Positions 5,179-53,145 of a DNA stretch of 64,000 nt are shown here, in pieces. Source of the DNA: Bigelowiella natans CCMP2755 (lineage: Eukaryota; Protista; Cercozoa); assembly GCA_000320545.1 (NCBI GenBank), contig ADNK01000257.1, positions 39,918 to 103,917 of the forward strand. Reading direction: 5' to 3'. A model generated the notes under the pieces. That model ran no database searches. It was not told the origin of the DNA and worked only from the letters and a program-made list of their open reading frames with translations. How positions within the stretch are numbered: position 1 is the stretch's first letter; the number at the start of each line of letters is the position of its first letter. The translations under genes were made by a program, and so were the position numbers.

Positions 5179-5504
5179 TGTAGCGCGTACCACTACGCGG
5201 GCACAAGTCACGTGCGACAACAAAGGGGTTGTCGCGGATATAGAATATAGATAACGTAGATATTAATACAGCATAGGCACGTGGGTTCCGGCGGGACTCA
5301 TGGCAGCACACCGGAAGTGTGCTGCCCCACGTGCGGCGGCATTCGCGAAAGCTTCGCGAATGATTACGCAGTGCACGATTTAATAAAAATATAATCTTTA
5401 ATAAAAATAAACACAACTCTTCAAAAGGAAGCAAACGTGCCTTTCCCCCCCCCTGCCTACTTGTGCACGTAGCGCCTCGGCCTGTGAACACCTTACGCGC
5501 AACA
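5179..5504 (+). repeat. 5' LTR (326 bp)
   Basis: TGTAGCGCGTA...TACGCGCAACA (11-bp terminal inverted repeat, 1 mismatch); no differences seen versus 10569-10894. Confidence 0.97.
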
Positions 5505-5509
5505 ACCTT

Positions 5510-5526
5510 TGGCTTCCACACACGGG
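5510..5526 (+). other. Candidate primer-binding site TGGCTTCCACACACGGG
   Basis: TGG start 5 nt after the 5' LTR; the reverse complement ends in ...GGAAG-CCA like a tRNA 3' end. Cognate tRNA not identified. Confidence 0.5.
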
Positions 5527-5543
5527 AAACGATTTGACTAACA

Positions 5544-8500
5544 ATGTCACAGCAGCTAGAAGAACAGCAGGACTTTGGCTCGCAGGCCGTGCAAGGGCAC
5601 GAGCAGAAACAGGAAAGGAAGGGCGATACGGACGCTAAGGAAGGAGGAGGAACACCTCCACAGGCACCGCCGGGACCAGCACCCGGGATTAAGAAAGCAG
5701 ATGCAGCAGCAGAGGCACTGGAGAACTTCTACGAGGCGGACGACGAGGACGTGGCCGCCGAAAGCAAGAAGGTCGTAATGGCATTACGAGCCTTGCGACC
5801 CAGGGCGAGCAACTACGCCAAACTGAAAGTATCGATAGAATACAAGTATCAGACACATGATGTTTGGGCAGCTATCATGCAGGACATCATGGATTACGAA
5901 GCAGACTTACCTCCAGAGTGGGCAGCTTTGTTTAGGAACGACGGGGGTCTGGGCGCCTCGCGGGGGACGACCCAGAGCACCGTCAAGCAGCAGCAGCCGG
6001 TACAGCGGAACACCCAGTTCATGTCTGTTAAAACAGCACCGGTTATGATAACGAAATACAACGGGAAAAGAGGTGAGGCAAGGAGGTGGTGGAAGAACGC
6101 TAGGAGTATACTCTGCGACTTTACCCCTAACCCCACCGAAAACGACAAGCTCAAATGGCTAGCTATAATAAAGCAAGCCATGGACCTTTACGAGACAGGC
6201 AGGACCCGGATCAGGCAGCTAGAGAAAATACACACTACAGTTAGTGGGCTACGAGACGTTGAGGCGATAATGAAGGCTTTTGTAAATGAACAGGATGCTA
6301 ACTCCCTACCCCAGGCTATTAGAAAATACAGAGCAATGATGCAGCATGAGAGAGAACCTGTTAGAGACTTTGCCACGCGCTTCCAGGATATGATCGACGA
6401 ACTACATGATTTTAATTACAACACAGGTGATGATCAGGCAAGGTTTGAAGAGTTCAAGTTAAAGATAAAGGAATCCACTTACGTTACGGAGAAAGGCTAC
6501 ACCACGATGGAGGCAGCAGTGCAGGCTATATCCCTACGCGAGCAGGAGCAGGACCGCAAGTTTACCAGCCCTAAGGTACCTGGCATAGGAAACATTAACG
6601 CTATTAAGCCGCAGCGAGACTGGTACAAGGACAGGGAAGGTAACCGACGTTGCGGATACTGCTCACGTAAAGGGAAACACACCGCTAAAGACTGCAGAGA
6701 CAGGAAAGAAGGACGACCCAGGATGACGATCAGGCAGCTCAACGAACACTACGAGAAGTTAAAGAGAAAGAAAGGCAGAGGACAAGGATATAACAACAGC
6801 AAATGGCAAGGCAGCAACAACGGGAAGAACAATAAATATAAGAACAAAAAGCAGAACAGTATCAATGCTATACAGCAGCAGATAAACGGAATATTAGATC
6901 ACCTTAAGCAGGCGCCGACGAAGACAGCAGTACCAGCAACGCAGGACCAAGACAAGCCCATGACCCTAGACGACATAAAGAACTTAGGAGTATGCAACAT
7001 TAATGACGAAGACGCTAACAGGACTATCAAAGTTGCTATGACCAAGGTTAAAGTTAAAGACAGCTACGGAGACTACAAGAAACTACCTGCCCTTTGGGAT
7101 AGTGGCAGCATGCCGAAGTCCTTCATAAGCCTAAGCACAGTAAGAAGGTTAGGACTATTGGATCAAGTGACTAAGAAAGAACGTAAATATGCTCAAGCAG
7201 ACGGAAGCTCTTCCATGAAGACCGTCGGTGAGCTAATGCTAAAGCTACAGATACCTGGCAGCGACGCGGAGACCCAAATCAAGACCCGAGTAGCCATGAC
7301 TTTATCCATGGAACTACTCCTCGGACAGGATGCCCTAGAAAAATTAGGGGGGATCATATCATTCTACAATCACAAGATATACTTTGCTAAGTTGCCAAAG
7401 AAGTCAGGCAGGACCATCAGCCAGAACATGATACGGCTTGACGAGTGGACCTCTGAGTCAAGCGTTAATGCGTTAGAGTTTATGGACCTAGCGGACAACA
7501 AGCTACCTACACCTACCGAGCTACGGAAGAAGAACCCCGGCAAGACCATCCGACAGATAACGGAGCTACTGGACAAGACCCCCCCAGCTGATGATTGGGA
7601 TATCGACAAAGGCAAAAAGTACATTAATAAAATATTAAACGAGAAGTACTCTGACATCACCAAGCCGACGACGAAGCCCTCCAGCAAGCTTACCCCAGTA
7701 AAGATCGAGCTAAAGAAGGGATACGAAGAGTGCATCATCAATGACCCAGAACATAGGCGACCGGAAGCGGACTGGGAAAAGATAGAGTGGCAGATCAATG
7801 AATGGGCAAAGGAAGGGAAGATAGAGCCAAGCAACTCACCATGGAACGTGAGACATGTGCTAGCTAAGAAACCTACTTACCCTTTCTTCCGCCTGGCGCA
7901 CAACTTCATCCGCCACAACCGAGTAATAAAGAGGATCCAGACACCTACACCAAGGATAGATGACGTTATTGAACACGTCATAGGATACAAATACTACTCT
8001 TCCCTAGATAAAAATGAATCATACATGCAGACACCCATCCACAAAACCTCCCGCCCCATTACCGCGTTCTCCAGCAGGCACAGGAAGTGGCACTTCGTCG
8101 TATTCCCTTACGGCCTAAGCATATCAGGGGATGCGTTCAGTAGTCAGAACTACAGGGCATACACACATGATGGGATGGCGTCTGTGTTGTGGGTGTTTGT
8201 GTTTGTGTATGTGGATGATGACATAATATGTACCAACACAGTCGTCGCTCAGATCTTCCTCCTGGAAAATATATTTATTAGGTTTGCACACTTCGGTTTT
8301 ACTATTAGACTGCAGAAGTGTACATTCCTAGCTACAAGAATCAAGTGGTGTGGATATTACCTGGAGCAAGGCCGCATCACCCCAAACCCCGAGAAAGTAG
8401 CAGCACTACAGCAAGCCCCTAAACCTAAGAATGCAAAGGAGTTAAAGTCATTCTTGCAGACTGCAGCTTGGATACTACGTAGGTTCTCCCCTACCTACGC

Positions 8501-10517
8501 TAGGACTGCAGCTGCTTTTACTACTGCTTACCGGAAGGAGAACTCTGTAGGCCTCAGCTTCGCTAAGGTGTGGGCCAAGGCTGGCCTTGATGCCCACTTC
8601 GATAACCTAATAAAGTTATGCAGCAACACCCTATTGAATGCTAAGCTAGACACTACTAGACCAGCTACCCTATGGACAGACTGGTCTAAGCTAGGTATGG
8701 CTGCTGTACTTACCCAAGACCAGCAGATCATACGGGTGTGGGGCAGGGCCTGCACAGCAGCTGAGGCCAAGTACAGCCCTACAAAAGGAGAGTATAAAGC
8801 CATGACTGAGGCGCAGAGGAAACTAAGATACTACCTGCTGTCGGTGCCCAGCTTCACCTTAATGACTGACCACAAGCCCCTCCTAGGCATCGACCGCAAG
8901 CTCGAAGCGCCTAACGATGAGTATGCAGCTATGAGGGCGGACACGGAAGAGTTTAGGGACAAGAGGACAGTGGTCTACGCACCAGGAGACAAGCAGCTTG
9001 CTGACTATTTCAGCAGGCTGTTCGAAAAGAAAGTCCCTACCCAGGTCACCCCTATGGTTAACGCGATTACCTTCGAGGACGGCGACTTCCTGCCTGAGCC
9101 AGAGGAGCTCCAGCACCTTCAAGAACACCTGGATAAATACAAACACAAGCATGAGGTACTTAGTGATAGGATATATGTATACACTAATAATGTTAGGCGT
9201 ACCTACGTGCCACGGCGGACCAGGGGAGCCCTTCTCTTTACCGCCCATGGACCTGCACACGTAGGAGAAAACCATATCACTGCTCTACTCTACCATTACT
9301 ACTGGCCCTACAAGCTAAAAGAGATAAGGACATACCTGCGTGGCTGCAGGTGCTCCAGCTTGAAGGCGGCAGGCGTCGCCACCAAGGAGTCCAGCAAGAG
9401 CCGTGCATCTAAGAAAATCAAAGCAAGGAACTTCTTAGATATCGTGCAAATTGATGTTTATAAGTACGATGGCTATCACTACCTTACCTTCGTTGATGTG
9501 GCCACTGGAAAGTGCTGGGTTAAAAAGATTATCAAGGTCAACGTTGCTAAGAAGAACAAAGGCTTATATAAGCAGAGGCTTACTAACTGCTACCGTACCT
9601 GGGAGTCTGAGCTCCAGGCTATCCCTGATGAAGTTAGCATAAACAAGATACCAAAGAAGTTACATGTGGATAATGAGACCTCTCTTCTACAGCTACCACA
9701 CCCTAATATTGATGCCTCACCTGTATACTATGCCCAGTCCAACTCCAAGGTAGAGCGACTCCACCGCACCTTGGCCAACCTAAGCAGGATAAATAGCACC
9801 ACACCAGACAAGATACAAGGGTTAGTAAACGACACCTTCACGTCTGGGGGAGGTATCAAGGATAAGGAGAGGGAAGAAGGCGACGACAACGACGACGATA
9901 CCGAGAGCGAAGACGAGAAGGTCCCGTACGATGGCCGAGTTCTAAAGGAAGGACAGTATGTTAGGGCCAAGGTAAATCTGAGATCGAGAAATAAACAAGA
10001 CCCCTTCTGGGGTGGCGTTGCAAAGGTTACCGAGAGGAAGGGGAGGAAGCAGTACTACATCTATGATGGGAACAGGGTCACCTTGCGCCACATCAGTCAC
10101 CTAAAGAATTATGATATCGGTGAGAAGCTCCTAGAGGATGTTAAAGTAAACCCTACTGTGTGGGAGCGAGCAATGCCTTGTTTAGGACCCCGACCTAAGT
10201 TCGATGTGGAATATGGAAACAATAAGGTCAGGGTGAACGACGATTGGCGCATGAAGATTGTCTATCTAGGCTACCCTGGATTACGAAATATGGAGAGGGT
10301 AGCTATGAAAATAAAGGACGGAAAATATCAGCTACTCTACCTAGCTGTTCCCGACTTACCCTTTGAGCACTGGTATAAGGTCCTGGGGGACCTTGATGCA
10401 GAGGGCTGGTATGGACACGAACCTAAGGACGAAGGTGAGTTCTGGGTAAGCGACAAAGGAGATAAGGTTAGAGAGGAATCTATTACCTGGTGGTTGGTGA
10501 AGTTCCGAAAGCGATGA
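5544..10517 (+). CDS. Gag-Pol polyprotein (1657 aa): Gag with Zn knuckle, aspartic protease, RT, RNase H, integrase, extra C-terminal domain
   Basis: CGYCSRKGKHTAKDC knuckle; LWDSGS protease; FPYGLS..YVDD RT; LWTDWS..YSPTKGE..TDHKPL RNase H; H..H..C.C, QIDV, HVDNE, SNSKVERLHRTL integrase; no frameshift or stop. Confidence 0.96.
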   Translation: MSQQLEEQQDFGSQAVQGHEQKQERKGDTDAKEGGGTPPQAPPGPAPGIKKADAAAEALENFYEADDEDVAAESKKVVMALRALRPRASNYAKLKVSIEYKYQTHDVWAAIMQDIMDYEADLPPEWAALFRNDGGLGASRGTTQSTVKQQQPVQRNTQFMSVKTAPVMITKYNGKRGEARRWWKNARSILCDFTPNPTENDKLKWLAIIKQAMDLYETGRTRIRQLEKIHTTVSGLRDVEAIMKAFVNEQDANSLPQAIRKYRAMMQHEREPVRDFATRFQDMIDELHDFNYNTGDDQARFEEFKLKIKESTYVTEKGYTTMEAAVQAISLREQEQDRKFTSPKVPGIGNINAIKPQRDWYKDREGNRRCGYCSRKGKHTAKDCRDRKEGRPRMTIRQLNEHYEKLKRKKGRGQGYNNSKWQGSNNGKNNKYKNKKQNSINAIQQQINGILDHLKQAPTKTAVPATQDQDKPMTLDDIKNLGVCNINDEDANRTIKVAMTKVKVKDSYGDYKKLPALWDSGSMPKSFISLSTVRRLGLLDQVTKKERKYAQADGSSSMKTVGELMLKLQIPGSDAETQIKTRVAMTLSMELLLGQDALEKLGGIISFYNHKIYFAKLPKKSGRTISQNMIRLDEWTSESSVNALEFMDLADNKLPTPTELRKKNPGKTIRQITELLDKTPPADDWDIDKGKKYINKILNEKYSDITKPTTKPSSKLTPVKIELKKGYEECIINDPEHRRPEADWEKIEWQINEWAKEGKIEPSNSPWNVRHVLAKKPTYPFFRLAHNFIRHNRVIKRIQTPTPRIDDVIEHVIGYKYYSSLDKNESYMQTPIHKTSRPITAFSSRHRKWHFVVFPYGLSISGDAFSSQNYRAYTHDGMASVLWVFVFVYVDDDIICTNTVVAQIFLLENIFIRFAHFGFTIRLQKCTFLATRIKWCGYYLEQGRITPNPEKVAALQQAPKPKNAKELKSFLQTAAWILRRFSPTYARTAAAFTTAYRKENSVGLSFAKVWAKAGLDAHFDNLIKLCSNTLLNAKLDTTRPATLWTDWSKLGMAAVLTQDQQIIRVWGRACTAAEAKYSPTKGEYKAMTEAQRKLRYYLLSVPSFTLMTDHKPLLGIDRKLEAPNDEYAAMRADTEEFRDKRTVVYAPGDKQLADYFSRLFEKKVPTQVTPMVNAITFEDGDFLPEPEELQHLQEHLDKYKHKHEVLSDRIYVYTNNVRRTYVPRRTRGALLFTAHGPAHVGENHITALLYHYYWPYKLKEIRTYLRGCRCSSLKAAGVATKESSKSRASKKIKARNFLDIVQIDVYKYDGYHYLTFVDVATGKCWVKKIIKVNVAKKNKGLYKQRLTNCYRTWESELQAIPDEVSINKIPKKLHVDNETSLLQLPHPNIDASPVYYAQSNSKVERLHRTLANLSRINSTTPDKIQGLVNDTFTSGGGIKDKEREEGDDNDDDTESEDEKVPYDGRVLKEGQYVRAKVNLRSRNKQDPFWGGVAKVTERKGRKQYYIYDGNRVTLRHISHLKNYDIGEKLLEDVKVNPTVWERAMPCLGPRPKFDVEYGNNKVRVNDDWRMKIVYLGYPGLRNMERVAMKIKDGKYQLLYLAVPDLPFEHWYKVLGDLDAEGWYGHEPKDEGEFWVSDKGDKVREESITWWLVKFRKR

Positions 10518-10525
10518 AGGTCTAA

Positions 10526-10568
10526 GGGAATAAGGAAGGAAGGAAGGAGCAACGTGACTTGGGGGAGG
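10526..10568 (+). other. Polypurine tract
   Basis: GGGAATAAGGAAGGAAGGAAGGAG...GGGGGAGG directly upstream of the 3' LTR. Confidence 0.8.
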
Positions 10569-10894
10569 TGTAGCGCGTACCACTACGCGGGCACAAGTCA
10601 CGTGCGACAACAAAGGGGTTGTCGCGGATATAGAATATAGATAACGTAGATATTAATACAGCATAGGCACGTGGGTTCCGGCGGGACTCATGGCAGCACA
10701 CCGGAAGTGTGCTGCCCCACGTGCGGCGGCATTCGCGAAAGCTTCGCGAATGATTACGCAGTGCACGATTTAATAAAAATATAATCTTTAATAAAAATAA
10801 ACACAACTCTTCAAAAGGAAGCAAACGTGCCTTTCCCCCCCCCTGCCTACTTGTGCACGTAGCGCCTCGGCCTGTGAACACCTTACGCGCAACA
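10569..10894 (+). repeat. 3' LTR (326 bp)
   Basis: Direct repeat of 5179-5504; the shared part of antisense ORFs 5135-5521 and 10522-10956 translates identically. Confidence 0.97.
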
Positions 10895-11063
10895 TGAAGG
10901 CAAACATCATCGGTCGGTGAATTGGGCTCTACGCACAAGCTAGCGCACAGGAGCATGTGTATTTTACCCTCATGGGCTTTGAGAAGACAGTGCTAACGTG
11001 GGATTCCGGCATGCGTGAAAATGTGACGGCGGGCAACGTAGTTGGCCGCGGTGGGACGGCAAT

Positions 11064-11398
11064 AGATGGTTTTCGCAAAAGTTTTTACAACAACTATTGG
11101 AGTAACGGAATTGCCAACTTGTAGAAATTTGTAAACTCATACGCTTTCGCAAGTTTCGACAAGTTTTTCCAATATAATTTCGGGGAAGGTGGTTTATTTT
11201 TCGGTGACAGATTTGAACTGCCTTCTCTCGAGGGAACGCCTGATGGGAAGGAAAAGGCGGCGGCAGATGGTGATGTTGGCAGTGGTTGCGGTGGCGGTGG
11301 CCAACAAGAGACAGCGACTAGACCCTATTCCCATTCCTGCTCTGCGCATCGAATCAGATCTCGAACGCAAAGGATGGAACGATGACCATTTGGTTCGG
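11064..11398 (+). repeat. Left inverted repeat (335 bp)
   Basis: AGATGGTTTTCGCAAAAG...CCATTTGGTTCGG is the reverse complement of 13280-13632, apart from a few substitutions and an 18-nt indel. Confidence 0.93.
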
Positions 11399-11780
11399 TG
11401 GTGTCGCTTCACAAGGAGTGAGATGCTCCGCATTGCACGAGCATGTCGCATTGGTCAGTGGAACTGGACCTCATCACGTGATGAACACTCGTGGCTCGAG
11501 GGCATGGTCCTCTTTTTACGTCGTCTTGCATGCCCTTGTGAGTGGGACGAACTTGTTGAGACTTTCGGTAGAAGTCCTGGATCCACATCCCGGATTTTCA
11601 AAGACGTGCTCCTTCGCATGTTTCCATCGTGTGAGGACCAGATGTGCTTGCACAGAGATCATTTGATGAACAATCTGGAACGTTTTGCAGACGCAACCCG
11701 CCGCAAAGGTGGTGAATTCTCTCAGAGAGACACCGTTGGACACATCGACGGCACAATCAGAAAGTGTTGCAGACCGACAA
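11243..11780 (+). pseudogene. Truncated, mutated Harbinger (DDE_Tnp_4-like) transposase
   Basis: CRFTRSEM..LFLRRLACPCEWDELVETFGRSPGSTSRIF..RKGG..VGHIDGTIRKCCRP matches the N-terminal half of the family. The second D and E are not found, and the frame degenerates into low-complexity sequence after ~11780. Confidence 0.8.
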
Positions 11781-12883
11781 TTACAATTGGTGCACATGCG
11801 CATGTGTGGCATGGCGCGCGCAGTGTGTCGCACGCAGCGTGTGCCTCAACCGACGTGCACGTGCGCAGTGCATGTGCACATGCGCATGCGATGCATGCAA
11901 TCACAAGCTGGCGCGCGCCACGCGATGCCGTTGCAATGCACGTCGTCGCATCGCAATTCTCATGCACAACAATTGCAGCTAGAGCCAGAATTGCAGATTC
12001 AATTGGGGCCAGAATTGTGGCCAGAATTGTGGCCAGAATCATCGCTAGAATCATGGCCGTGATTGTTGAAACATCCCACATTGCCATGTGCATGCACGGC
12101 AATCTAGCAATGCAGCCGATGCAATGGACACAGTGACAGCATGCTCAACGTGTGCATGCATGCACATGCACATGCAAAAGGTTGCTCACAAGAACAAGGA
12201 AGGTCGCCCGAGTGGATGCAGTCTTGGCATCGGCATGGTGACAGCATGCACAGTGCGCACATGACACATGACATTGCATGTCCATGATGAGGAGGATCAT
12301 GAGGACAAAAACATGTGCAGAAACAAGCAAGCCAAGGCAATTGAGGAATCCAAGGAGTCCAACTTGCACGTTGTCTGCAATTGATTCGGGTTCAGTCCAC
12401 ATCACTCTCGGTTCATCATCAATCCTAGCTTCACGATGCTTTCCATCATCGTCTTCATTGCAGTGAGCATGTTTTGCTGCATGTCGAGCTGTTGGGGTTG
12501 GGGTGACATGCACAACAAAGAAATGTCAAATCCAGAAATGAAAATAGAAGACACAGAAAAATGGGACATTCATAAAAAAGAAACATCATGTGGAATTCAT
12601 AATATTTTCATAATTTTATTGGAATCGAATTGCTATTCTATAACTTTTCCATACTATGAATGTAAATCTAGATCATCTACGAATACAAACAAAATCAAAT
12701 ATCATTCTGAAAATTTGAGGATTGCATTGTTATCTACAAAAAATATGAATATGAATAAACATGAAATTATTTGTATAGCATATGTCATTCCAACTATTAG
12801 TTTATTACATAATCATTTTCATAACAAAAAAATAAATATACAACATTTAATGACAAAACAATAAAAAAATTTAACACAGATGA

Positions 12884-13435
12884 TCAAAGCATGTTAGAAG
12901 TTTTAGAAGATATATTTGAGTGCACTCTGTCTGTAGTCCATGCATGCACAAGGTCAGGGTGAGGGGGGTTGACCTGCAACTTGGCTTCATGCTCCCTGCG
13001 TTCCCGATCACGCACCGCATCAGCTGCAGCCTTTTTTTCCTCAAGCTTTGCCTTTTCATTGAATTCCCATCGTCTGTAATCATATTCTGCAGTCTTGTCA
13101 GTGAGAGAGAGCAACACTCTCTCTAGGAATCCCCGTTGTTTCTCTTGTTCTTCACGCTGGAATTCTCGTTCCGATGTGCGATTTTCCCGTTCGAACTCAG
13201 CTTCGTTTTTCATTGCATCTGCTATGGCACTGAGTCCTGCACCGAGCGAGCTCCTGCCCCCCCTGCCAATGGAAACCCTCCGAACCAAATGGTCATCGTT
13301 CCATCCTTTGCGTTCGAGATCTGATTCGATGCGCAGAGCAGGAATGGGAATAGGGTCTAGTCGCTGTCTCTTGTTGGCCACCGCCACCGCAGCCACTGCC
13401 ATCATCAGCATCTGCCGCCGCCTTTTCCTTCCCAT
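12884..13435 (-). CDS. Chimeric ORF: transposase N-terminus (from the inverted repeat) fused to a charged coiled-coil, probably the tail of the Harbinger accessory protein
   Basis: First ~52 aa nearly identical to the transposase start, then E/R/K-rich helix (AIADAMKNEAEFERENRTSEREFQREEQEKQR). Confidence 0.5.
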   Translation of the reverse strand: MGRKRRRQMLMMAVAAVAVANKRQRLDPIPIPALRIESDLERKGWNDDHLVRRVSIGRGGRSSLGAGLSAIADAMKNEAEFERENRTSEREFQREEQEKQRGFLERVLLSLTDKTAEYDYRRWEFNEKAKLEEKKAAADAVRDRERREHEAKLQVNPPHPDLVHAWTTDRVHSNISSKTSNML

Positions 13436-13632
13436 CAGGCGTGTGGTCACCCCCCAATCTTCCCGGGGGAGAAGGCAGTTCAAATCTGTCACCGAAAAAT
13501 AAACCACCTTCCCCGAAATTATGTTGGAAAAACTTGTCGAAACTTGCGAAAGCGTATGAGTTTACAAATTTCTACAAGTTGGCAATTCCGTTACTCCAAT
13601 AGTTGTTGTAAAAACTTTTGCGAAAACCGTCT
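13280..13632 (-). repeat. Right inverted repeat (353 bp)
   Basis: CCGAACCAAATGG...GCGAAAACCGTCT; see left copy. Confidence 0.93.
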
Positions 13633-14190
13633 AATGTTCTTCATGTCACTATCTCAGCCGTTGGTAAAACCGTAGGAATACACGTGTGTGTTTGAATGTA
13701 ACCTTAGTACACGTGCCAATGCGTAGTTGCACACTTTGCTCCTTGTAACAGATAACAAGCCCGTTTTTCAGGCGTCGGAATCCTTTAGAGTTTGTCGAAT
13801 TCCTTTTGGATTTCCAATAATTCCTCGTTGTCGCAGGTAGAAAATGGGACCAGTGTTGGACACTAGGAGAGTTTTTTTGCTGGAAACGTTCAGTTGTGCA
13901 GAGCTAAGGTAGAAACCGCTGATCTTAGCTTTGGCTCGATGTACTTGATAGGTTTTGTTGTCGCAGGCTAAAATACCCCCCATTACTAAACTTGAACGAA
14001 GATCATGTTCTATTCTGTGTTCTGGATTACCGCGCAGCAATGGGTGCTCACATATACGCCCTGGTTGATACAGAAGCCGAGGAGAAAAGAGGAAGAGGCC
14101 TTGGCACACAATTGTGTGATTCGTACAAATCCCAAACAACTCTTTCTATATTGTATTCGATATTTTGGGTGGTTTCCATCTTTGTGAAAA

Positions 14191-28679: not shown

Positions 28680-29713
28680 TTTGCATTGATTAATAACAAC
28701 ACGTCGATCTTGCACAGCACGCACATGTGATGCGATGTTCACACACGTACAAGCTACACGTAATGGCGTGGCATGAAAATGAAATCAATGGCCTGGCGCA
28801 GCCTGCGGGGCCATGAGGCATCGCAATGTACATGCTAGCATGACAAGCATGCTTGTCATCATCGCTCAGCGCTACTTAGGACTTAAACTTGACTTGCGTC
28901 AGACTTGTTCATCTTGGTGTCGCACAATGATTTCATCATCGATTGCACGTTTGGTTGCAAAGCATTGTGTTCATCTGTAGCCATGCAAATTGAGTGTTGT
29001 TGTTAAAGGCTGTGTTGATCATGCATGAGCATTCAGCGAAGACAGTCATCAGAGCTGTCTGGCGATGCGCACAATGCCAACTGTGCAGGTCAATCAGTTG
29101 TGTTTAACCATTGCAACAGCGATCACGCATGTGCACGTTCTTCTCTGCGTGTTCTTTCTTTTTCGTCACTGAACGATGAAATGATGTTCATCACTTTCTG
29201 AAATGTTCGCACGCATCTAGTAGCTTGCATTGCTGAGAAAGCACTTTCAAAATTCTTTCGCGGGTCAGTGCCACATCAGGATGATTGTTCGTCATGCCGT
29301 GCACCGTTAGCCATGTGTTCAGGGCCTTTTGAATTCTTCGAGAGCCTCACAGGTACTTGCCCATTCTCTAGCACACTGCCCTCATGTGGCAGCAGGCAGC
29401 AGCCACATCAGGATGGGGTCGAAAGAAAATGCATGTGTTGCATTTACATGATGAGAAAACGTTGGCATTGCTGCTTCTGCTCACTGATGCACACCATTGT
29501 TGTTGCATTCCTCCTCACTTTCCCACTGTCGGGATGGACGTTGCGGAACAAGTGGAATGTCCAAGTGGAATGGTCGACGTCACATTGTGAGAATTAGGAT
29601 GAAGACAGCAGAGAGCAGAGGAATGATGCAACTCCCAAGATCCGTCACCTTCAAGCGATCCACCATCCTTTGCATCGCATCGGTTTGCAGTGTGCAAAAG
29701 AGAGAGATGGAGA

Positions 29714-29757
<44 letters not shown>

Positions 29758-32700
29758 TAGCTCGCTCGCTCGCTCGCTCTTTCCTCCCTCCCTTCCTCCC
29801 TTTCTCTGCAATTCCGTCGAGTGCCAAATCAACAATGCACCAAAGACATCCAACAAATCAGTGATGTCGAAGCCACCAGACGACAAGTTGCTCCGACGGT
29901 TCATCGAGACGCACAATCTCATCACGAGCACACGCGATTGCTGGGTGGTGCTAGAGCACTGTGCAAGGCAGTAGCTTGGCTTTTCGCATTTTGATTTCTT
30001 CGCGGCAAAAAGGTGCTTCGATTGCAGTGGTGATCTAGATTTTCATTGGGTTGGTTGCAGCGCACATTGCTTGCTAGCCAGGTAGCATGGCACACGATGA
30101 TGTGAACATTTCTAGATTGCCACACAACGACGAGTCATTCGCATGAAATGAAACGAGATCCAGACAGTTCGACTTCAAAAGGACGTCGACAAATGCGGTT
30201 TTGATGCCTGGCATCCTTCATGTCAAACACACCGATTTCAGCAACAATTAGAAGCATCACTGTAACGTCGTGCTTCCCTCTTTTCCATTGAAGACCGCCA
30301 TTTCATTCTCATATCTGATTTGGTCCATGTTAGCTTTCTCAATGTATGGTTGTCTCTCTTTTTCAGACAAACTCTTCCAAGCCTGGCCCACCAGCTTGAC
30401 AATTTCCGTATGCGCTCTGTGCGAATAGCACCTTCGAAAGTGAGAGATTTTGTGCTCGAAAAAGAAGATGTAACTATTCCTCGACTTTTTGGGCCTGAGA
30501 GCCTGGAGGGACTTCCTTTTACGTTTCCTCCTTTGCCTTCTTCTTTCCTTCTTCGCAACTTTGAAAAATTGCTCCTTGCTCTCCTTTGTTGCAAGATCCC
30601 ACTTTTTTTTTGTGAGTATGTCAATGCCAGGCTCGAAGATGTTCGGGTGGTTGGATCTGATCACTGGTCGATATTTTTGGAAGAAGTAATGTAGAGCGCA
30701 GTCTTCAAGGCTCTTGTCCTTGAAACAAGGTGTTTTGCTCTTCCTTTTGATGAATCGCGTTTTCACTTTAGCAGTGATAATTTCTGATGCTTTTTTTTTA
30801 GACAGCCCAACAACTTCCGTCTCGCCTAAATTTCGAAGGTAGCGCAACTGCTTCAATGTTGCATACTCATACTCTCCTGACTCCTTTGAATGTATTGCTG
30901 TCCTACCATTACGTAATTTCATTTGAAAGCTTCTACTGGTGTCATAATGCCTCTTTCGAATTTCTTTAACTCTCTCAGCCTTTGCATTGAGACGGGCCTG
31001 CGCCTTTTTCACACTGCCAAACTTGGTTGAAGCAACTCGTTCTAAGTTGGTTCGCAAGAATATCTTTGCAGGATGAAAGCCTGGATTTTTCGGATTAGGT
31101 ACACGGCAAAATATTTCATCCTTTAAGTCATGTGGGCACAACCCCAGCTGGAACCACGCTGCTTGTTGCGACAGGAACTTTTCTCGTCCCTTCTGTGAAA
31201 AAATGCAACCATGGCAGACTCCATCTCCATGAATCCAATGCAAAGCGTGAGGCTTGTGGCACAAGTTGCATAGGTCCAAGTTTGGATTCCGCTTCAAGAG
31301 CCACAAATTAGCCTTGACAAATTGCAATTCTCATCAGTACGAACATGTGCAAGAATTTAACAATGGGACCGTTTTGTGGACGTAGATCAGCCTGCATTTT
31401 GTTCTGTGATATTGCACAAATTCTCTTTCGAGGACGACATTAGTAAATTGATCCGCAACATAAGAAAACTGTGAAAAGTTATAGATTGCTTTGTCTTTCA
31501 CAAAATCGTCTACAATTTTCTTGAAATCAAACCGCCCTGCATGATGAACATGTCCATCTGCTTTGGTTGGAATGCACAGACCGGTTAGTGGGCACTTTGG
31601 AGCTTCATTGAGAGACCTAAACCCATCTAAAACTTCATCTCGAAAAGCAAATATGTCATCCAGCGTAGCCTGCCTTGCGGCTCTACGAAACTCCATGGGC
31701 ACCTTCATGGACTCTGAAATTTTCTTTGTTGGAGGTTCAGACGACTCAAGTGGATAATGATTTTTTGGATCACATTCTTCATGATGCCATCTAATCGCTA
31801 CGAAGTTCGCTTTCATTTTCCCATGAAATTTCGAACGTCTTTTGATTCCAACCCTCATGTGTCCTTTCTCAATGACTTCATCACAAGATCCACAGATGCT
31901 GCGATTAGATCGTGCCTTTTCGATCATCCTGCAGAAGCCAGCATGCTTCGGGAGTTTGATCGAATCGAAATGCTTTGTGGACATGCCTTTTGGTCTCAAT
32001 TGTGTCCTTTGGAATGTGAAAAACCCGTTTCATCTCACAGATCTTCTTCTCACCAGGAGATCATGACTCGGTCGACGTTCGTGACCAGTGAGACTCGAAA
32101 GACCCCAACTCGTCAGTTCATTTCACTCCAAGAAGAAGCAATTGATGTCCAAAGTCTGAGATGCCACGCATTTGAAAATGGTCTGTGGTGTCATGACCCT
32201 GTCATGGTGGTCATGGCGGTGGTCATGGCTTGCCACGAACGTTTGCCAAACCTCGAACAATCATCACAGTGCGACTCAGAAAATGTGACCAGCTTGGTGC
32301 ATTTGGCCTCCGTTTGCTGTGAAGTTCCCACGGCGTCCTCTTGTTCGTGCTGTTGCCTTCAAACGGTTGTTTGCTGTGTGCTTGCGCGTGCAGTTTTTGC
32401 ATCAATGCGAAGTTCAGTGTTCAATGTTCAGTGTTCAATGCTTTCCCAAGTGTTGTTGAAACACCTTTTCTTCTTCTTTCTTTCTGTTTTTGCCGAAGAG
32501 CGCGTGACTCAAGTGGGTGAACTGGCCTGGTTGTTCTCAGACTTCGGTTTCGTTCTGCACTCATGAAACCGAAGAACATCGGGCCAGAATTTGCAATCTG
32601 CCATGATGGACATGCAACACACTGTGCATGCAAGACATGCAACACACTGTGTGTGCAATGCACATTGTGCATTGCTGTGTCTGTCATTGCCTTCGAGGCA

Positions 32701-33660
32701 CTGCGTTTCGAACACTGCAAATGTCAGTTAGAACCTGGACACATTCCAACTGTGCCAACAATTGACAGACAATTCACCTGGCCTCAACTCGTCATCCCTG
32801 GCTTCCTTGGATGCAGGGTGTTGGCCAGTTGTGTCAGCACTCACCACCAACAGGGTGCTGACAAGTCCTTGCAATGATTGTTGTTGAGGCTCTGCTGCGT
32901 GCATGTGCCTGTCTCCCATGTGGTTCTGGCGCATGCAGATTTGATCAATGCTTTGTTCATTGTTCATTGTTCATTGTTCATTGCTCAGCTCACAACACGA
33001 TGAATCACGGTGTCACGCTCGCAAAGTCCAACTGCACCCTCCACACTGCTAGACTGCTGCGGCAATGCACTCCGCTTAACCCACCACTGGTGTCATGAGT
33101 CGAATTGAGCAAGTGTTTCGTGAATTGAACGTGAATTCTGTTTCCTCCTCCATTCACTCCACTCGGTCTGCAGCGGTGGCAATTTGCCTTCCCTTTGGTG
33201 AGTCAAACCGGATGATGGTCAGCTCAACTGTTCAGTGGCAAGTTTCTTTTTTCCTGCTGAGTCCGCGACACGTCTGGTTTGTGCGAGTGTGTGTGGCTTG
33301 GCTGTGCGCGCAGAGCAGCGCAGCAGCAACGAGTCATCGATCGCACAATGATCACATTCACGTTTGTGCAAGCATGCGTTTTTGCGTCGCAGCATGGCTC
33401 GTGTTCTGCTTTGCTCGTGCTGTGCACGAATGGCTCAAACGTGCACGTGCACGCGCTGCCACTGTGAACGTGTGGTGACCTGGTGATTCACAATTGGGTG
33501 TGATCCATGATCCAAACGATGATCACAATCAACAACCACTCCTCTGTCCGAAACACACAAGAAACAATGCGAGTGCACAGACAAGATGGAGATGTGATCG
33601 CATCTGTCGGCAGCAGCACCCGCTCCCTCTCGATGACAACTTCTGGAACTGAACTTTCCT
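28680..33660. other. TpA-depleted island between two convergent gene ends, containing decayed sequence and one intact-looking gene
   Basis: TpA strongly depleted at 28740-30240 and almost absent at 31908-33662; normal TpA within most of the 30257-31750 coding region. Confidence 0.85.
30257..31984 (-). CDS. Two-exon (31984-31370, 31312-30257; ~556 aa) protein: PARP-type Zn finger + DCL/HNH-like domain + XPA-like Zn finger/XPA_C-like region + HMG box
   Basis: The two listed ORFs are in frame and joined by a 57-nt GT..TACTGAT..AG intron, giving RLIYVHKT|ANLWLL. Motifs: IEKARSNRSICGSC..IEKGHMRVG..WHHEEC; CPLTG..HVHH..F..YH; C-x2-C-x14-C-x2-C then NPKNPGFHPAKIFL..FGS; RPKKSRNSYIFF..GQAWKSLSEKERQPY. 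Confidence 0.75.
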
Positions 33661-33661
33661 G

Positions 33662-34186
33662 CTATCCTCCTCTCTCGACATTTGATCCTCCTCCCATTTT
33701 GTCGATAGATCTAGATTCATCATTGTCATTATCACCCCTGCCATGGTCTTCATCATCAGAGTCATCATCCTTTTCGCCAATATCCACATATTGAGAGGCG
33801 CCCCTCAAGAACGATTCCAGATCTTCTGGCTCATCATCCTCTTTTAGCTTCAATGCTGCAATGGCTTCCTCAGTGATTTCTTTCAGATTTGCCGATGGTG
33901 CTGCATCTTGGATCAGCTTGTGCTGGAGAGAAAGCTCTTCTTTGAACCGGATATTTTCCTACAAACGTGGTCAAAGTAGCATTTAGATTTTGATAAACTG
34001 TTGTTGAGGGGGGGAGAGGGAGAAGGGGAGGTTAAGAAATAAATCTATGATCTGTAATCAGGATGGTAGTTAGGGACAACAGACAGAAGATAGCCATTGA
34101 AATATTCCCGCAAGCTTCTTTGCTCTTTCTTCCAGGTCCAATTCCCCGACGACTTCGGGTAATAGGGATCGATAGAGCTGTCGAAT

Positions 34187-46774: not shown

Positions 46775-48872
46775 ATTTTCCGTCTTTGGAGTTCTTGATG
46801 TATGCAAAGTAATGGCCGCCCGTCGCTGATCCTCTGCACACGACGAAAATACATAGCAAACGACGAAGAACAAACAGTAAGAAAAGATGATAATGATAAC
46901 GATGATGATGATGATGACGATGACGATGAGGATTATGTGTGTCTGCTTTTGGTTGTAACGACATATGCAGATCTTAGGATAGTGAGTGGATAGAACTCGT
47001 GAAGACATGGGCAATGGCAATGCATTGCTGATTTGCTTTACGAACATCTTTGTCTGCTTCTTCTACTACTGTGACAACTACTACTCATTAACAAGAAGAA
47101 TACAAGAGGTAGTAGTGGTGCGACCACCTGTGGATAAGTAGAGCGTAGAGATCATAGCTAAACGAAGCTTCTTCCTGTATAGGAGGAAGGTTTAAAGATT
47201 ATCATCATCATCATCATCATCATTAATCGCTGTGATCGTCTCTCGTCATTATTATCATCGTCCTTATCATGAATTACCCCTTTGTCTGCTGTTGGTGCTG
47301 CTGCTGCTGCTTTTGGATTTCCGACATATTTTGAGAGATCCAGCTGAAAGATGGATATTATCGACAACTTACATGTGTGGTTTCTCTTTGTGCTTTTACA
47401 TATCATCATTATCATCATCATCATCATCATCATCATCCTCACTATCATCACCATCACCATCTTCATAAGAGGAGGGATGTGGAGGTGACTCTTACCGTCG
47501 GTGGAAAGTATACTTTGTCGTGCAGCTTTACCCGCCTTTATTTAATTTAGTAATTATCAGTATTCACTGTGAAACTGTATTATCTTCATCGGGAGAACTA
47601 TTTATTTATTCGAATATACATCTTCTCTTCGTGGATTGAGTACACAAACTTCCCCCTTGCTCATCATCATCGTCATCGTCATCATCATCATTGCAATGCA
47701 CCATCATCAATCAATTAACCACCTCATAAAACGGTAATCGATGTCGAATCGCTTGAGTGTACACGCAAGGATCTTCGGAAGTCTGCAGCAGCATCGATAA
47801 GCGGAGCACATGTGTACACATACATGTGCAGTACAGACAACAACGCCTCACAACACACACCTCTCATGAGATTTGATTTTTTTTTTCCGAAAAGGAAGAA
47901 AAAGGCACATGCATGGTGGACATTTTGGCCACAAGAAAGGATGGTAAGTTTTATAGATATAATGATAACAATGGAGATGAAAGATGGTAGAGGAAAGGAT
48001 AAGAAGACTAATGCCAATGATTGCGTTGGACAGTCATTAGGGAAGTGAGACGACGAATGAACGAACAGCAGCCACGATTAAGATCAGAGAAAAGAAGAAG
48101 ATGGTGTGACCACAACAGCAGCATCATCGCACACATAAAAGTAGGTAGAGGCTCTTACTTCTTGAATCGAAGGCCTTTGTGAGCTGTCTTTTTATCACCT
48201 ATCACCGCATTCATGATACTAGGAGGTGAGAATGATGATGATGAGGGGGAGCATAGGTGATGATGACAACGATGGCAGCAGGCACTATGGAAGGAAGACT
48301 CATCAGGAAATGAATTAATCATTTTCCTTTCTTGGCTCCCTTCTTTGTGCTCGCGAACTTGACAAATGCTGCTGCTTTTGTTTATTTTCATCGTCAACAA
48401 GAACAATCGGAAAAGTATGACTGATTTCCTCTCCATCTACCTCTTCCCCCCCCCCCCCCAACACTATGAAAGAATAGAACCACCGTTTTCATCCCGGATG
48501 CCGTTGTCACCCTCGAAAATCTGCCAAAGACCATTGGCATGCATTCAATGCTTTAATAATATCACAGAGAAATAGATGGTCTCACTATTATCGACATATG
48601 CACTAACGGTGACGAATTAGCTAATTTTCATCCAAATTCAGCCATTAAGCGACCGTGGGCTTGAGGTATTTAGTAAAGCAATCTTGGATGGTCTTGCAGT
48701 CTAAAATAACAATAACAATAATGATAATAATAATGATAAATGATGATAAATGATAGTAACAAGTATCATTATTATCCTCGTCGCCATACATAATTCTTGC
48801 TTCGAACGCTTTTAAAACTCCAAAGTAAAACGTGGAAAGTAGCAAGCCACACACACACACACACAACACACA

Positions 48873-52160: not shown

Positions 52161-53145
52161 GTAGTCACAGAATGTATGTGTTGAGAAATTATTGCTTGCA
52201 TGTGTGTATACACATATGCATTGTGAGAGTCATATTTATTTGTCAACGGTCATCTTTATCAACGGTTGATAATAAAGTGTGTGACGCCTATAGCAGACGT
52301 AGTTGCATGATGTCCATTGTAGCTCATGCCATTCGAAGTGTATAGCATCACGTGGTAGTGATGTAACGGCCGCGTATAGACTAAACTAAGCATCAAGTAG
52401 CACTTGTAGCATACAAAAATTCAGTAAATCTGGTGGACAGCATACACGTCTAGAAATACGTAGCATGTAAATTGCATGTGAGATGTAATGAAGTGATTAA
52501 ATATTTTGAATAGTCATCCTAATGTAATCGTGCAAAGCAGCGGCTACGGTGCTCATTTTTTGTCTATTTGTCTCTACTATTATGTGCTTCATGCATTTAA
52601 AAGCGTCCATGTATGTTCTGTGGTCGATGTGATAGCTATATATGTCGCGCATCGCAATACGCGTACGCGCAGCTGGCCACGAATAATATTCATTGTCTCT
52701 ACTGTGCAACGAAGTTACGCTGATAATCGCACAATAGCGAAATTAACTTGAAACGAGATTCTTCAAAAGTCGCCTAGTAATAATACTCTGTCTTAATTGC
52801 GAGTGTTCAAGCAGACGTGCCCATGCGTATGCGCGTTTGCCAAGCCATACTTTATAGTGCTGCCGAAATCACTGATAGCATCTTTTATTACACTGCTATG
52901 CGACACGCATGCAGTATGTAGCCACATATACATATGTCGAGATGTATATGCGGATGGACCCGCTGTTGGGAAAGCAGGCTGACAGCTAGTGTGTCACTTC
53001 ACATATTTTACAGTCTATCCAGTAAATATCATATATATTATTTACGATCGTGTACAACTATCATTGTCTATGTTTATCGACTAGAAGCTGGAAAATTTAT
53101 CTAGCATGCAGAGCAAGCGCCTGTGACGCCTTGTTAGATAGATCA

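Follow-up and report, generated by a model that had tools for sequence, protein, structure and literature searches.

A PIF/Harbinger Transposase Remnant in Bigelowiella natans that Has Very Probably Passed through TpA-Targeted Hypermutation

Introduction

What has emptied a kilobase of nuclear DNA of the dinucleotide TpA, and what did its abundant TpG and CpA read before? This question is raised by positions 11401–12540 of a 64-kb stretch of DNA from Bigelowiella natans, which was analyzed here at its full length and is called the window in the following. An initial annotation made from the letters alone had taken this segment for the interior of a Harbinger transposon, in which TpA was the ancestral state and had been turned into TpG or CpA.

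In mutation-accumulation lines of B. natans, hypermutation of TpA to TpG or CpA has been observed de novo (Mettrop et al., 2026, preprint, bioRxiv 10.64898/2026.01.13.699255): Of 302 nuclear substitutions, 231 fell into inserts of NCLDV and virophage origin (211 and 20, respectively), and 230 of these 231 were A→G or T→C exchanges, almost all of them at TpA. The rate within the inserts amounts to about 1e-7 per site per generation, roughly a thousand times the background, with intron and intergenic sites mutating as fast as exon sites (Table S1 of the preprint). The hypermutated viral region is single-copy genomic DNA that is transcriptionally silent and includes intergenic DNA; as the responsible enzyme, a DNA adenine deaminase of the ADAT2/TadA type has been proposed. 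The preprint further lists 124 clusters of TpA-poor, CpA+TpG-rich windows, 324 TpA-depleted genes enriched in DDE endonuclease and reverse-transcriptase domains, and, in its Table S8, 470 genes that rank both among the lowest 5% for TpA and among the highest 5% for CpA+TpG, including gene 67790, which overlaps our segment.

In the literature searched, we found no other paper on TpA hypermutation in B. natans beyond this preprint, from which both the process and the membership of gene 67790 are already known. The process was measured there in the NCLDV and virophage inserts, whereas the link to transposon-like genes is statistical only and gene 67790 is unannotated; moreover, its main text mentions neither a CTAG/TAG neighbor effect nor the conversion of microsatellites, nor does it describe the element with gene 67790 as a mosaic. 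What is new here is the identification of this gene as the remnant of a Harbinger transposase within a rearranged unit that is flanked by a 3-bp duplication.

Results and Discussion

Identity of the Coding Fragment

The product of the open reading frame at 11189–12136 (P0001) is 100% identical to jgi|Bigna1|67790 (fgenesh1_pg.4_#_284) on scaffold 4, a gene of the B. natans nuclear genome whose origin is mobile, that is, transposase-derived. A phmmer search of 1.84 billion representatives with the translation of 11300–11785 returned 272 matches, the nearest relative being a transcript-derived protein of the chlorarachniophyte Amorphochlora amoebiformis with 47–52% identity. Four full-length relatives (P0009, P0012, P0039, and P0043) carry the domain DDE_Tnp_4 (PF13359) directly past the aligned part, so that our fragment corresponds to the N-terminal half of a PIF/Harbinger transposase; E-values against PF13359-bearing relatives reach down to 2e-43 and 5e-11, and one cluster of relatives bears the name DDE Tnp4 domain protein in its source. 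Homology ends at about 11776–11866, just past the first catalytic aspartate (GHIDGT...CCRP), and P0001 has no Pfam match, so that the DDE_Tnp_4 catalytic domain is missing from it. Judged by these sequence relationships, gene 67790 is a fragment of a PIF/Harbinger family member and not an intact copy: The Harbinger label of the initial annotation was right about the family, but the copy holds the N-terminal part only.

The other searches returned little. A Pfam scan of the open reading frames within 11685–12864 gave no match, and 11801–12488 has no similarity to any protein or Pfam family. A second open reading frame with a Myb/SANT-like domain was not found. Homologue searches with the proteins P0001 and P0007 (see below) returned only the two local gene models, tblastn with the relatives detected no second transposase copy in the window, and an exact scan of metagenome contigs with the terminal 24 nt gave no match.

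Architecture of the Unit

The fragment is part of a unit (11064–13632) that is bounded by inverted arms of 333 bp and carries AAT on either flank (Table 1). The inverted termini and the homologous N-terminal region are shared with PIF/Harbinger elements (PF13359), as may be the 3-bp target duplication. The remnant differs from them in several respects: It stops at the first catalytic aspartate, the Myb/SANT partner is absent among its detected reading frames, and the duplicated AAT has the right length but an atypical sequence, the usual one being TWA; a match of this length at a chosen border arises by chance in about 1 of 64 cases. In addition, the arms are unusually long, containing the 5′ UTR as well as the first coding part, because the 5′ end has been duplicated in inverse orientation. 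Both arms share the protein start MGRKRRRQM..., from which the left one leads into the transposase and the right one into an unrelated, coiled-coil-like sequence. We also considered the right arm as a diverged copy of the transposase and rejected this, as the DNA past the arms aligns at random level and the protein match ends at the arm.

Table 1. Coordinates of the features of the remnant within the window.
Feature	Positions	Strand	Evidence or remark
Putative 3-bp target-site duplication AAT, left copy	11061–11063		directly outside the inverted-repeat unit
Left inverted arm	11064–11398	+	97–98% complementary to 13277–13632, one 18-nt indel
Transposase N-terminal half, Bigna1 gene model 67790	11249–11830	+	272 phmmer matches; 100% identity to jgi|Bigna1|67790
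TGC (Cys), mostly-Tyr column	11531–11533	+	alignment with 148 relatives
CAC (His) before catalytic Asp, mostly-Phe column	11741–11743	+	alignment, 138 relatives
TpA-free low-complexity interior, without recognizable coding homology	11801–12488		TA o/e 0.10, TG 1.94, CA 2.15
GT-AG intron of right-arm gene	12489–12973	-	mapping of P0007 and junction of transcript contig L001
Right-arm gene, Bigna1 67791 / MMETSP transcript, expressed, spliced	12402–13435	-	transcript-derived protein and contig L001
Right inverted arm	13277–13632	-	complementary to the left arm
Putative target-site duplication AAT, right copy	13633–13635		directly outside the inverted-repeat unit

The gene that starts in the right arm (P0151) is Bigna1 67791. 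The transcript-derived protein P0007 maps to 13435–12974 and 12488–12405, and a transcript contig (L001) has the same intron junction; the product (P0007/P0151) belongs to no Pfam family. Positions 1–1026 of L001 (JGI sample 3300017184) correspond to 10862–11398, 13276–12974, and 12488–12306 of the window: The contig begins within the 3′ LTR of the neighboring retrotransposon, runs through the left flank and the left arm, and continues into the exons of the right-arm gene. This path is probably an assembly switch via the 97% identical arms; the contig still shows that transcription passes from the LTR into the remnant and that the right-arm gene is spliced.

The LTR in question belongs to an intact Ty3/gypsy retrotransposon (5179–10894) to the left of the remnant, with a polyprotein reading frame of 1657 amino acids, two LTRs of 326 bp with 100% identity, and TGAA at either side. 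With a TA o/e (observed over expected) of 1.13 it is unaffected by the conversion of TpA, although it lies only 170 bp from the void; either the conversion was confined to particular places or episodes, or the retrotransposon arrived afterwards.

TpA Depletion and Its Borders

The segment 11401–12540 contains exactly 7 TpA (at 11517, 11569, 11782, 11980, 12046, 12105, and 12426), as the initial annotation had counted. Given the base composition of the segment and a TpA ratio of 0.78 for the window as a whole, 52.7 would be expected (Poisson P(≤7) = 3e-15), and the median of all 1140-nt stretches of the window is 68; values of 7 or fewer occur at two places only, here and at 31.6–32.6 kb. The o/e ratios are 0.10 for TA, 1.97 for CA, 1.76 for TG (about 1.87 for TG and CA together), and 0.82 for CG (61 CpG), and the segment thus passes both cut-offs of the preprint, namely Rho(TpA) ≤ 0.43 with Rho(CpA+TpG) ≥ 1.52 (Mettrop et al., 2026). 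Host open reading frames in the same window have a TA o/e of 0.69–0.73. TG and CA are about equally frequent in all parts of the element, from which it follows that both strands were hit; a TG-versus-CA asymmetry as a sign of transcription coupling was seen in none of these parts. Further voids lie at 28900–30250 and 31900–33700, the latter with 823 nt (31906–32729) devoid of any TpA; the TpA that survive in these two voids are mostly in CTAG or have a G next to them on the 3′ side.

Within the arms, the depletion is graded. The outer ~130 bp of the left arm (to 11195) have a TA o/e of 0.60 (8 TA), which is about the level of host genes, and the inner ~200 bp one of 0.18 (2 TA); in neither arm are the outer 130 bp depleted. 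Selection for intact termini in a still-transposing unit is a possible reason why TpA was kept there. The two arms have identical converted sequence with no TG-versus-CA discordance, based on about 6 converted sites (roughly P 0.02), and one of the differences between them is TA (11173) versus CA. Because the converted sequence is identical, the conversion probably preceded the inverted duplication, unless the arms were homogenized afterwards; with about 6 sites, this argument is a weak one.

On the right, TA returns as abruptly as had been noted (at about 12541): The first one stands at 12545, and 41 are found up to 12934. This TA-rich block is the core of the spliced intron of the right-arm gene, the margins of which are TA-free, and the adjoining exons are TpA-poor as well (TA o/e of exon 1, 0.25). 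The core has a GC content of 0.24, far below the 0.41 of B. natans introns (Mettrop et al., 2026); terminal repeats or a target duplication were not seen in it. Despite its 41 TpA, TG and CA reach an o/e of about 1.56 in the core. The core may have been inserted later or be converted in part. A depletion restricted to mature mRNA, with introns and promoters spared, was considered and not adopted: It is unlikely because the intron margins are TA-free, because L001 also covers the TA-normal outer arm, and because the published rates of exon, intron, and intergenic sites are equal.

Direction of Change

That TpA is the ancestral state is supported chiefly by the mutation-accumulation data: For B. 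natans, the direction is settled by TpA mutations seen de novo, and with gene 67790 listed in Table S8 it very probably holds at this locus, too (Mettrop et al., 2026). In the available portion of Table S2, no mutation appears on scaffold 4 at this locus, where 15 TpA are left and the target is nearly exhausted.

The protein adds to this in a limited way. We aligned the fragment with its relatives and counted residues per column, from 148 sequences at 11531 and from 138 at 11741. In the column of the cysteine codon TGC, which lies in frame within ORF 11189–12136 and gives the motif RLACP, 84 of the 148 relatives have Tyr, 36 Phe, and 5 Cys, and Amorphochlora has Tyr as well (RLSYP): Here a Tyr ancestor is well founded, and the change TAC→TGC claimed beforehand is a clean case. 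The second example put forward, GHIDGT with the histidine codon CAC, is likewise present and in frame, but a Tyr ancestor is weak at this place, as the column is made up of 125 Phe, 6 Tyr, and no His among 138 relatives, with Phe in Amorphochlora; since Phe→His takes two steps, it is not a clean TA case. Other positions behave like the first: A His at 11486 stands where Amorphochlora has Tyr, three Met (ATG) and two Thr (ACA) occupy columns in which Ile ranks first or second in frequency, and one Glu, its codon preceded by a T, faces Lys or Arg in relatives. Each of these Met, Thr, and Glu replacements is a single step from TA to TG or CA. The fragment contains no Tyr at all, where 4.15 would be expected from the column profile (P ~0.009), a condition shared by 3 of 138 relatives.

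We also attempted to polarize the changes by reversion toward the family profile. With TG/CA set back to TA, the fit becomes better at 13 of 57 non-synonymous sites, compared with 11 of 110 for other G→A and C→T reversions; with TG/CA set back to CG, it becomes better at 15 of 54, compared with 9 of 90 controls, in most cases because an Arg is regained. As the two rates are alike, the approach does not separate TA from CG ancestry and was abandoned for this purpose. Among the 49 single-step amino-acid differences from Amorphochlora, at 47–52% identity, 5–6 are of the TA type. Read at the level of the sequence, the protein evidence agrees with a TA ancestor and by itself gives no direction, because the reversion to CG fits as often as that to TA; the evidence for TA ancestry that the initial annotation drew from the letters is thinner than claimed.

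The low-complexity interior (11801–12488) contributes a second type of evidence through its alternating tracts and a 12-nt tandem. The two perfect pyrimidine-purine alternations without TA that had been pointed out are real and each one base longer than given (11868–11890 instead of 11869–11890, and 12148–12176 instead of 12149–12176), and a third one lies at 11790–11808. In all three, TG and CA follow each other at random, with 3, 5, and 9 switches between them. Such mixed tracts with 3–9 switches occur in voids only. Away from the voids, each long tract repeats one dinucleotide throughout, as (TA)n, (CA)n, or (TG)n; tracts of (TA)n are frequent and those of (CG)n nearly absent. The mixtures are as expected from independent hits on either strand of (TA)n. 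However, CG accounts for 8 of the 42 in-phase dinucleotides of these tracts, and no single step under a strict TpA rule leads to CG. Events of the type TG→CG, as they occur in Table S2, could account for these CG. Among the 211 NCLDV mutations listed there, T→C exchanges outside TpA are found three times at ATG and once at ATT. Outside the voids, short tracts of TG, CA, and few TA with 3 switches each (47806–47830 and 52197–52221) look like partly converted (TA)n. The tandem comprises 3.2 copies at 12001–12039 with 96% matches (TRF) and extends with a 24-nt period over 12001–12058; its units read AATTGTGGCCAG (twice), AATCATCGCTAG, and AATCATGGCCGT, which bears out the TG/CA variants as well as the CTAG/CCAG variants reported for it.

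Context of the Surviving TpA

Across the four voids of the window, 15 of 38 surviving TpA lie in CTAG, compared with 135 of 3597 elsewhere (OR 16.7, p 6e-12), and in the element itself 7 of 15 do. To relate this to the published process, we tallied by hand the base 3′ of the mutated A, with strands folded, for the 211 NCLDV mutations of Table S2 (Mettrop et al., 2026): A occurs 67 times, C 52 times, G 20 times, and T 67 times. G thus makes up 20 of 206 (9.7%), compared with 21% of all TAN (p 2e-5), the denominator being taken from this window and not from the viral region. In the same table, TAG (3) and CTA (17) are unequal, although they represent the same context on opposite strands. The survival of CTAG matches the specificity of the present-day mutator, because CTAG presents T-A-G on both strands. 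We therefore lean toward a mutator with a 3′-neighbor rule, by which an A before G is avoided and the palindrome CTAG, protected on both strands, becomes the typical survivor of a void.

Alternative Explanations

TpG and CpA also arise by decay of methylated CpG; in that case, the alternating tracts would go back to (CG)n, and the shortage of TA would be a coincidence. The caution of the initial annotation that the TG/CA pair alone could stem from CG is justified, as a CG ancestor would equally give rise to the mixed tracts and to a repeat position that varies between TG and CA, and the Arg-restoring reversions described above point the same way. Yet CpG is not depleted at the locus, the whole TG/CA excess would require an ancestral CpG o/e of about 2, and no decay of CpG can remove TpA down to an o/e of 0.10. 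The scarcity of (CG)n next to frequent (TA)n in the window and the fact that the hypermutation measured in B. natans targets TpA (Mettrop et al., 2026) render this explanation highly improbable, with ordinary CpG decay possibly adding a minor share of TG and CA. An origin without any mutator is slightly less remote but still improbable: The DNA may have been TpA-poor from the outset, as foreign DNA, or selected against UpA in its transcripts. Avoidance of UpA is common to mRNAs in general, the depleted stretches match, for the most part, the transcribed exons of both gene models next to a TA-rich intron core, and Tyr-free relatives exist. Nevertheless, the host reading frames of the window are nowhere near a TA o/e of 0.1, the most depleted part (11801–12488) has no coding similarity, and the intron margins are as TA-free as the exons. 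Moreover, conserved Tyr and Ile codons are replaced by exactly their TG/CA derivatives, the CTAG survivors mirror the TAG deficit measured in Table S2, and the equal published rates of intron, intergenic, and exon sites (Table S1) speak against an origin without a mutator, too.

The least probable of the three explanations moves the chemistry to RNA: An ADAR-like enzyme would edit A to I in double-stranded RNA, to which the inverted arms or convergent transcripts would give rise, and the edited sequence would enter the genome via cDNA. The locus has such arms and is transcribed from both sides, and ADARs prefer a U 5′ of the edited A (as stated in Mettrop et al., 2026). Harbinger elements, however, move as DNA, and the intron is kept at the locus, so that no retrocopy is present. 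On the 3′ side, ADARs favor a G next to the edited A, which is opposite to the TAG deficit found here. Finally, the viral region of the preprint is hit although it is single-copy and transcriptionally silent, and its intergenic DNA is hit too.

Proposed History of the Locus

Taking the evidence together, we consider it very likely that the locus is a remnant of a PIF/Harbinger element with its 5′ end kept twice, which has for the most part gone through the TpA-targeted hypermutation of B. natans. It resembles the viral inserts of Mettrop et al. in the species concerned, in the loss of TpA, in the gain of CpA and TpG, and in the involvement of both strands. In the proposed sequence of events, the A of TpA would be changed to G on either strand, so that TA subsequently reads TG or CA, and this conversion would have continued to a near-total loss of TpA, the pattern being taken from this locus and the process from the preprint. 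The enzyme would be an adenine deaminase of the ADAT2/TadA type, as proposed there. Most survivors stand in CTAG, which offers T-A-G on both strands, and T-A-G is also the context with the fewest hits among the de novo mutations of the preprint. Conversion probably came first and the inverted duplication after it. Today the 5′ end is present twice in the form of 333-bp inverted arms, together with the N-terminal half of the transposase and the flanking 3-bp duplication. The TA-rich intron core and the intact LTR retrotransposon are probably later additions or lie outside the targeted domain.

Comparison with Known Mutators of Mobile DNA

Fungal RIP likewise introduces transitions at a specific dinucleotide, ruins mobile DNA, and leaves a strong skew with sharp borders. 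The chemistry differs: In RIP, C is replaced by T, mostly within CpA, which creates TpA and lowers GC, whereas the process in B. natans destroys TpA and raises GC; the signature of RIP, an excess of TpA, is absent at our locus, where the skew is opposite (TA o/e 0.10, CA 1.97). RIP moreover requires duplicated sequence and a sexual cycle, whereas in B. natans a viral insert present as a single copy is hit, and this in clonal cultures. With the APOBECs and ADARs of animals, the B. natans process would have in common that a deaminase-type defense acts on mobile or viral nucleic acid, and ADARs share the preference for a 5′ U or T. APOBECs, however, deaminate C and ADARs act on RNA, with a 3′ preference that differs from the disfavored G found here, whereas the substrate in our case appears to be the genomic DNA of a DNA transposon.

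Conclusion

The TpA-directed A→G hypermutation of B. natans is genome-defense-like, with a chemistry opposite to that of fungal RIP. To this known process, the locus adds an annotated example rather than a discovery, the gene being already on the list of the preprint: It places a DNA transposon of a named superfamily among the targets and displays the saturated end state, in which Tyr codons are gone, (TA)n has become mixed TG/CA tracts, and CTAG is what survives. The neighbor-context fingerprint is offered for comparison with the complete mutation table and for a check on candidate deaminases, for which, if it holds true, a comparison of TTAA or ATAT with CTAG would make a simple substrate test. 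The CTAG fingerprint would then tie the old TpA voids of transposons to the enzyme that is active in B. natans today.
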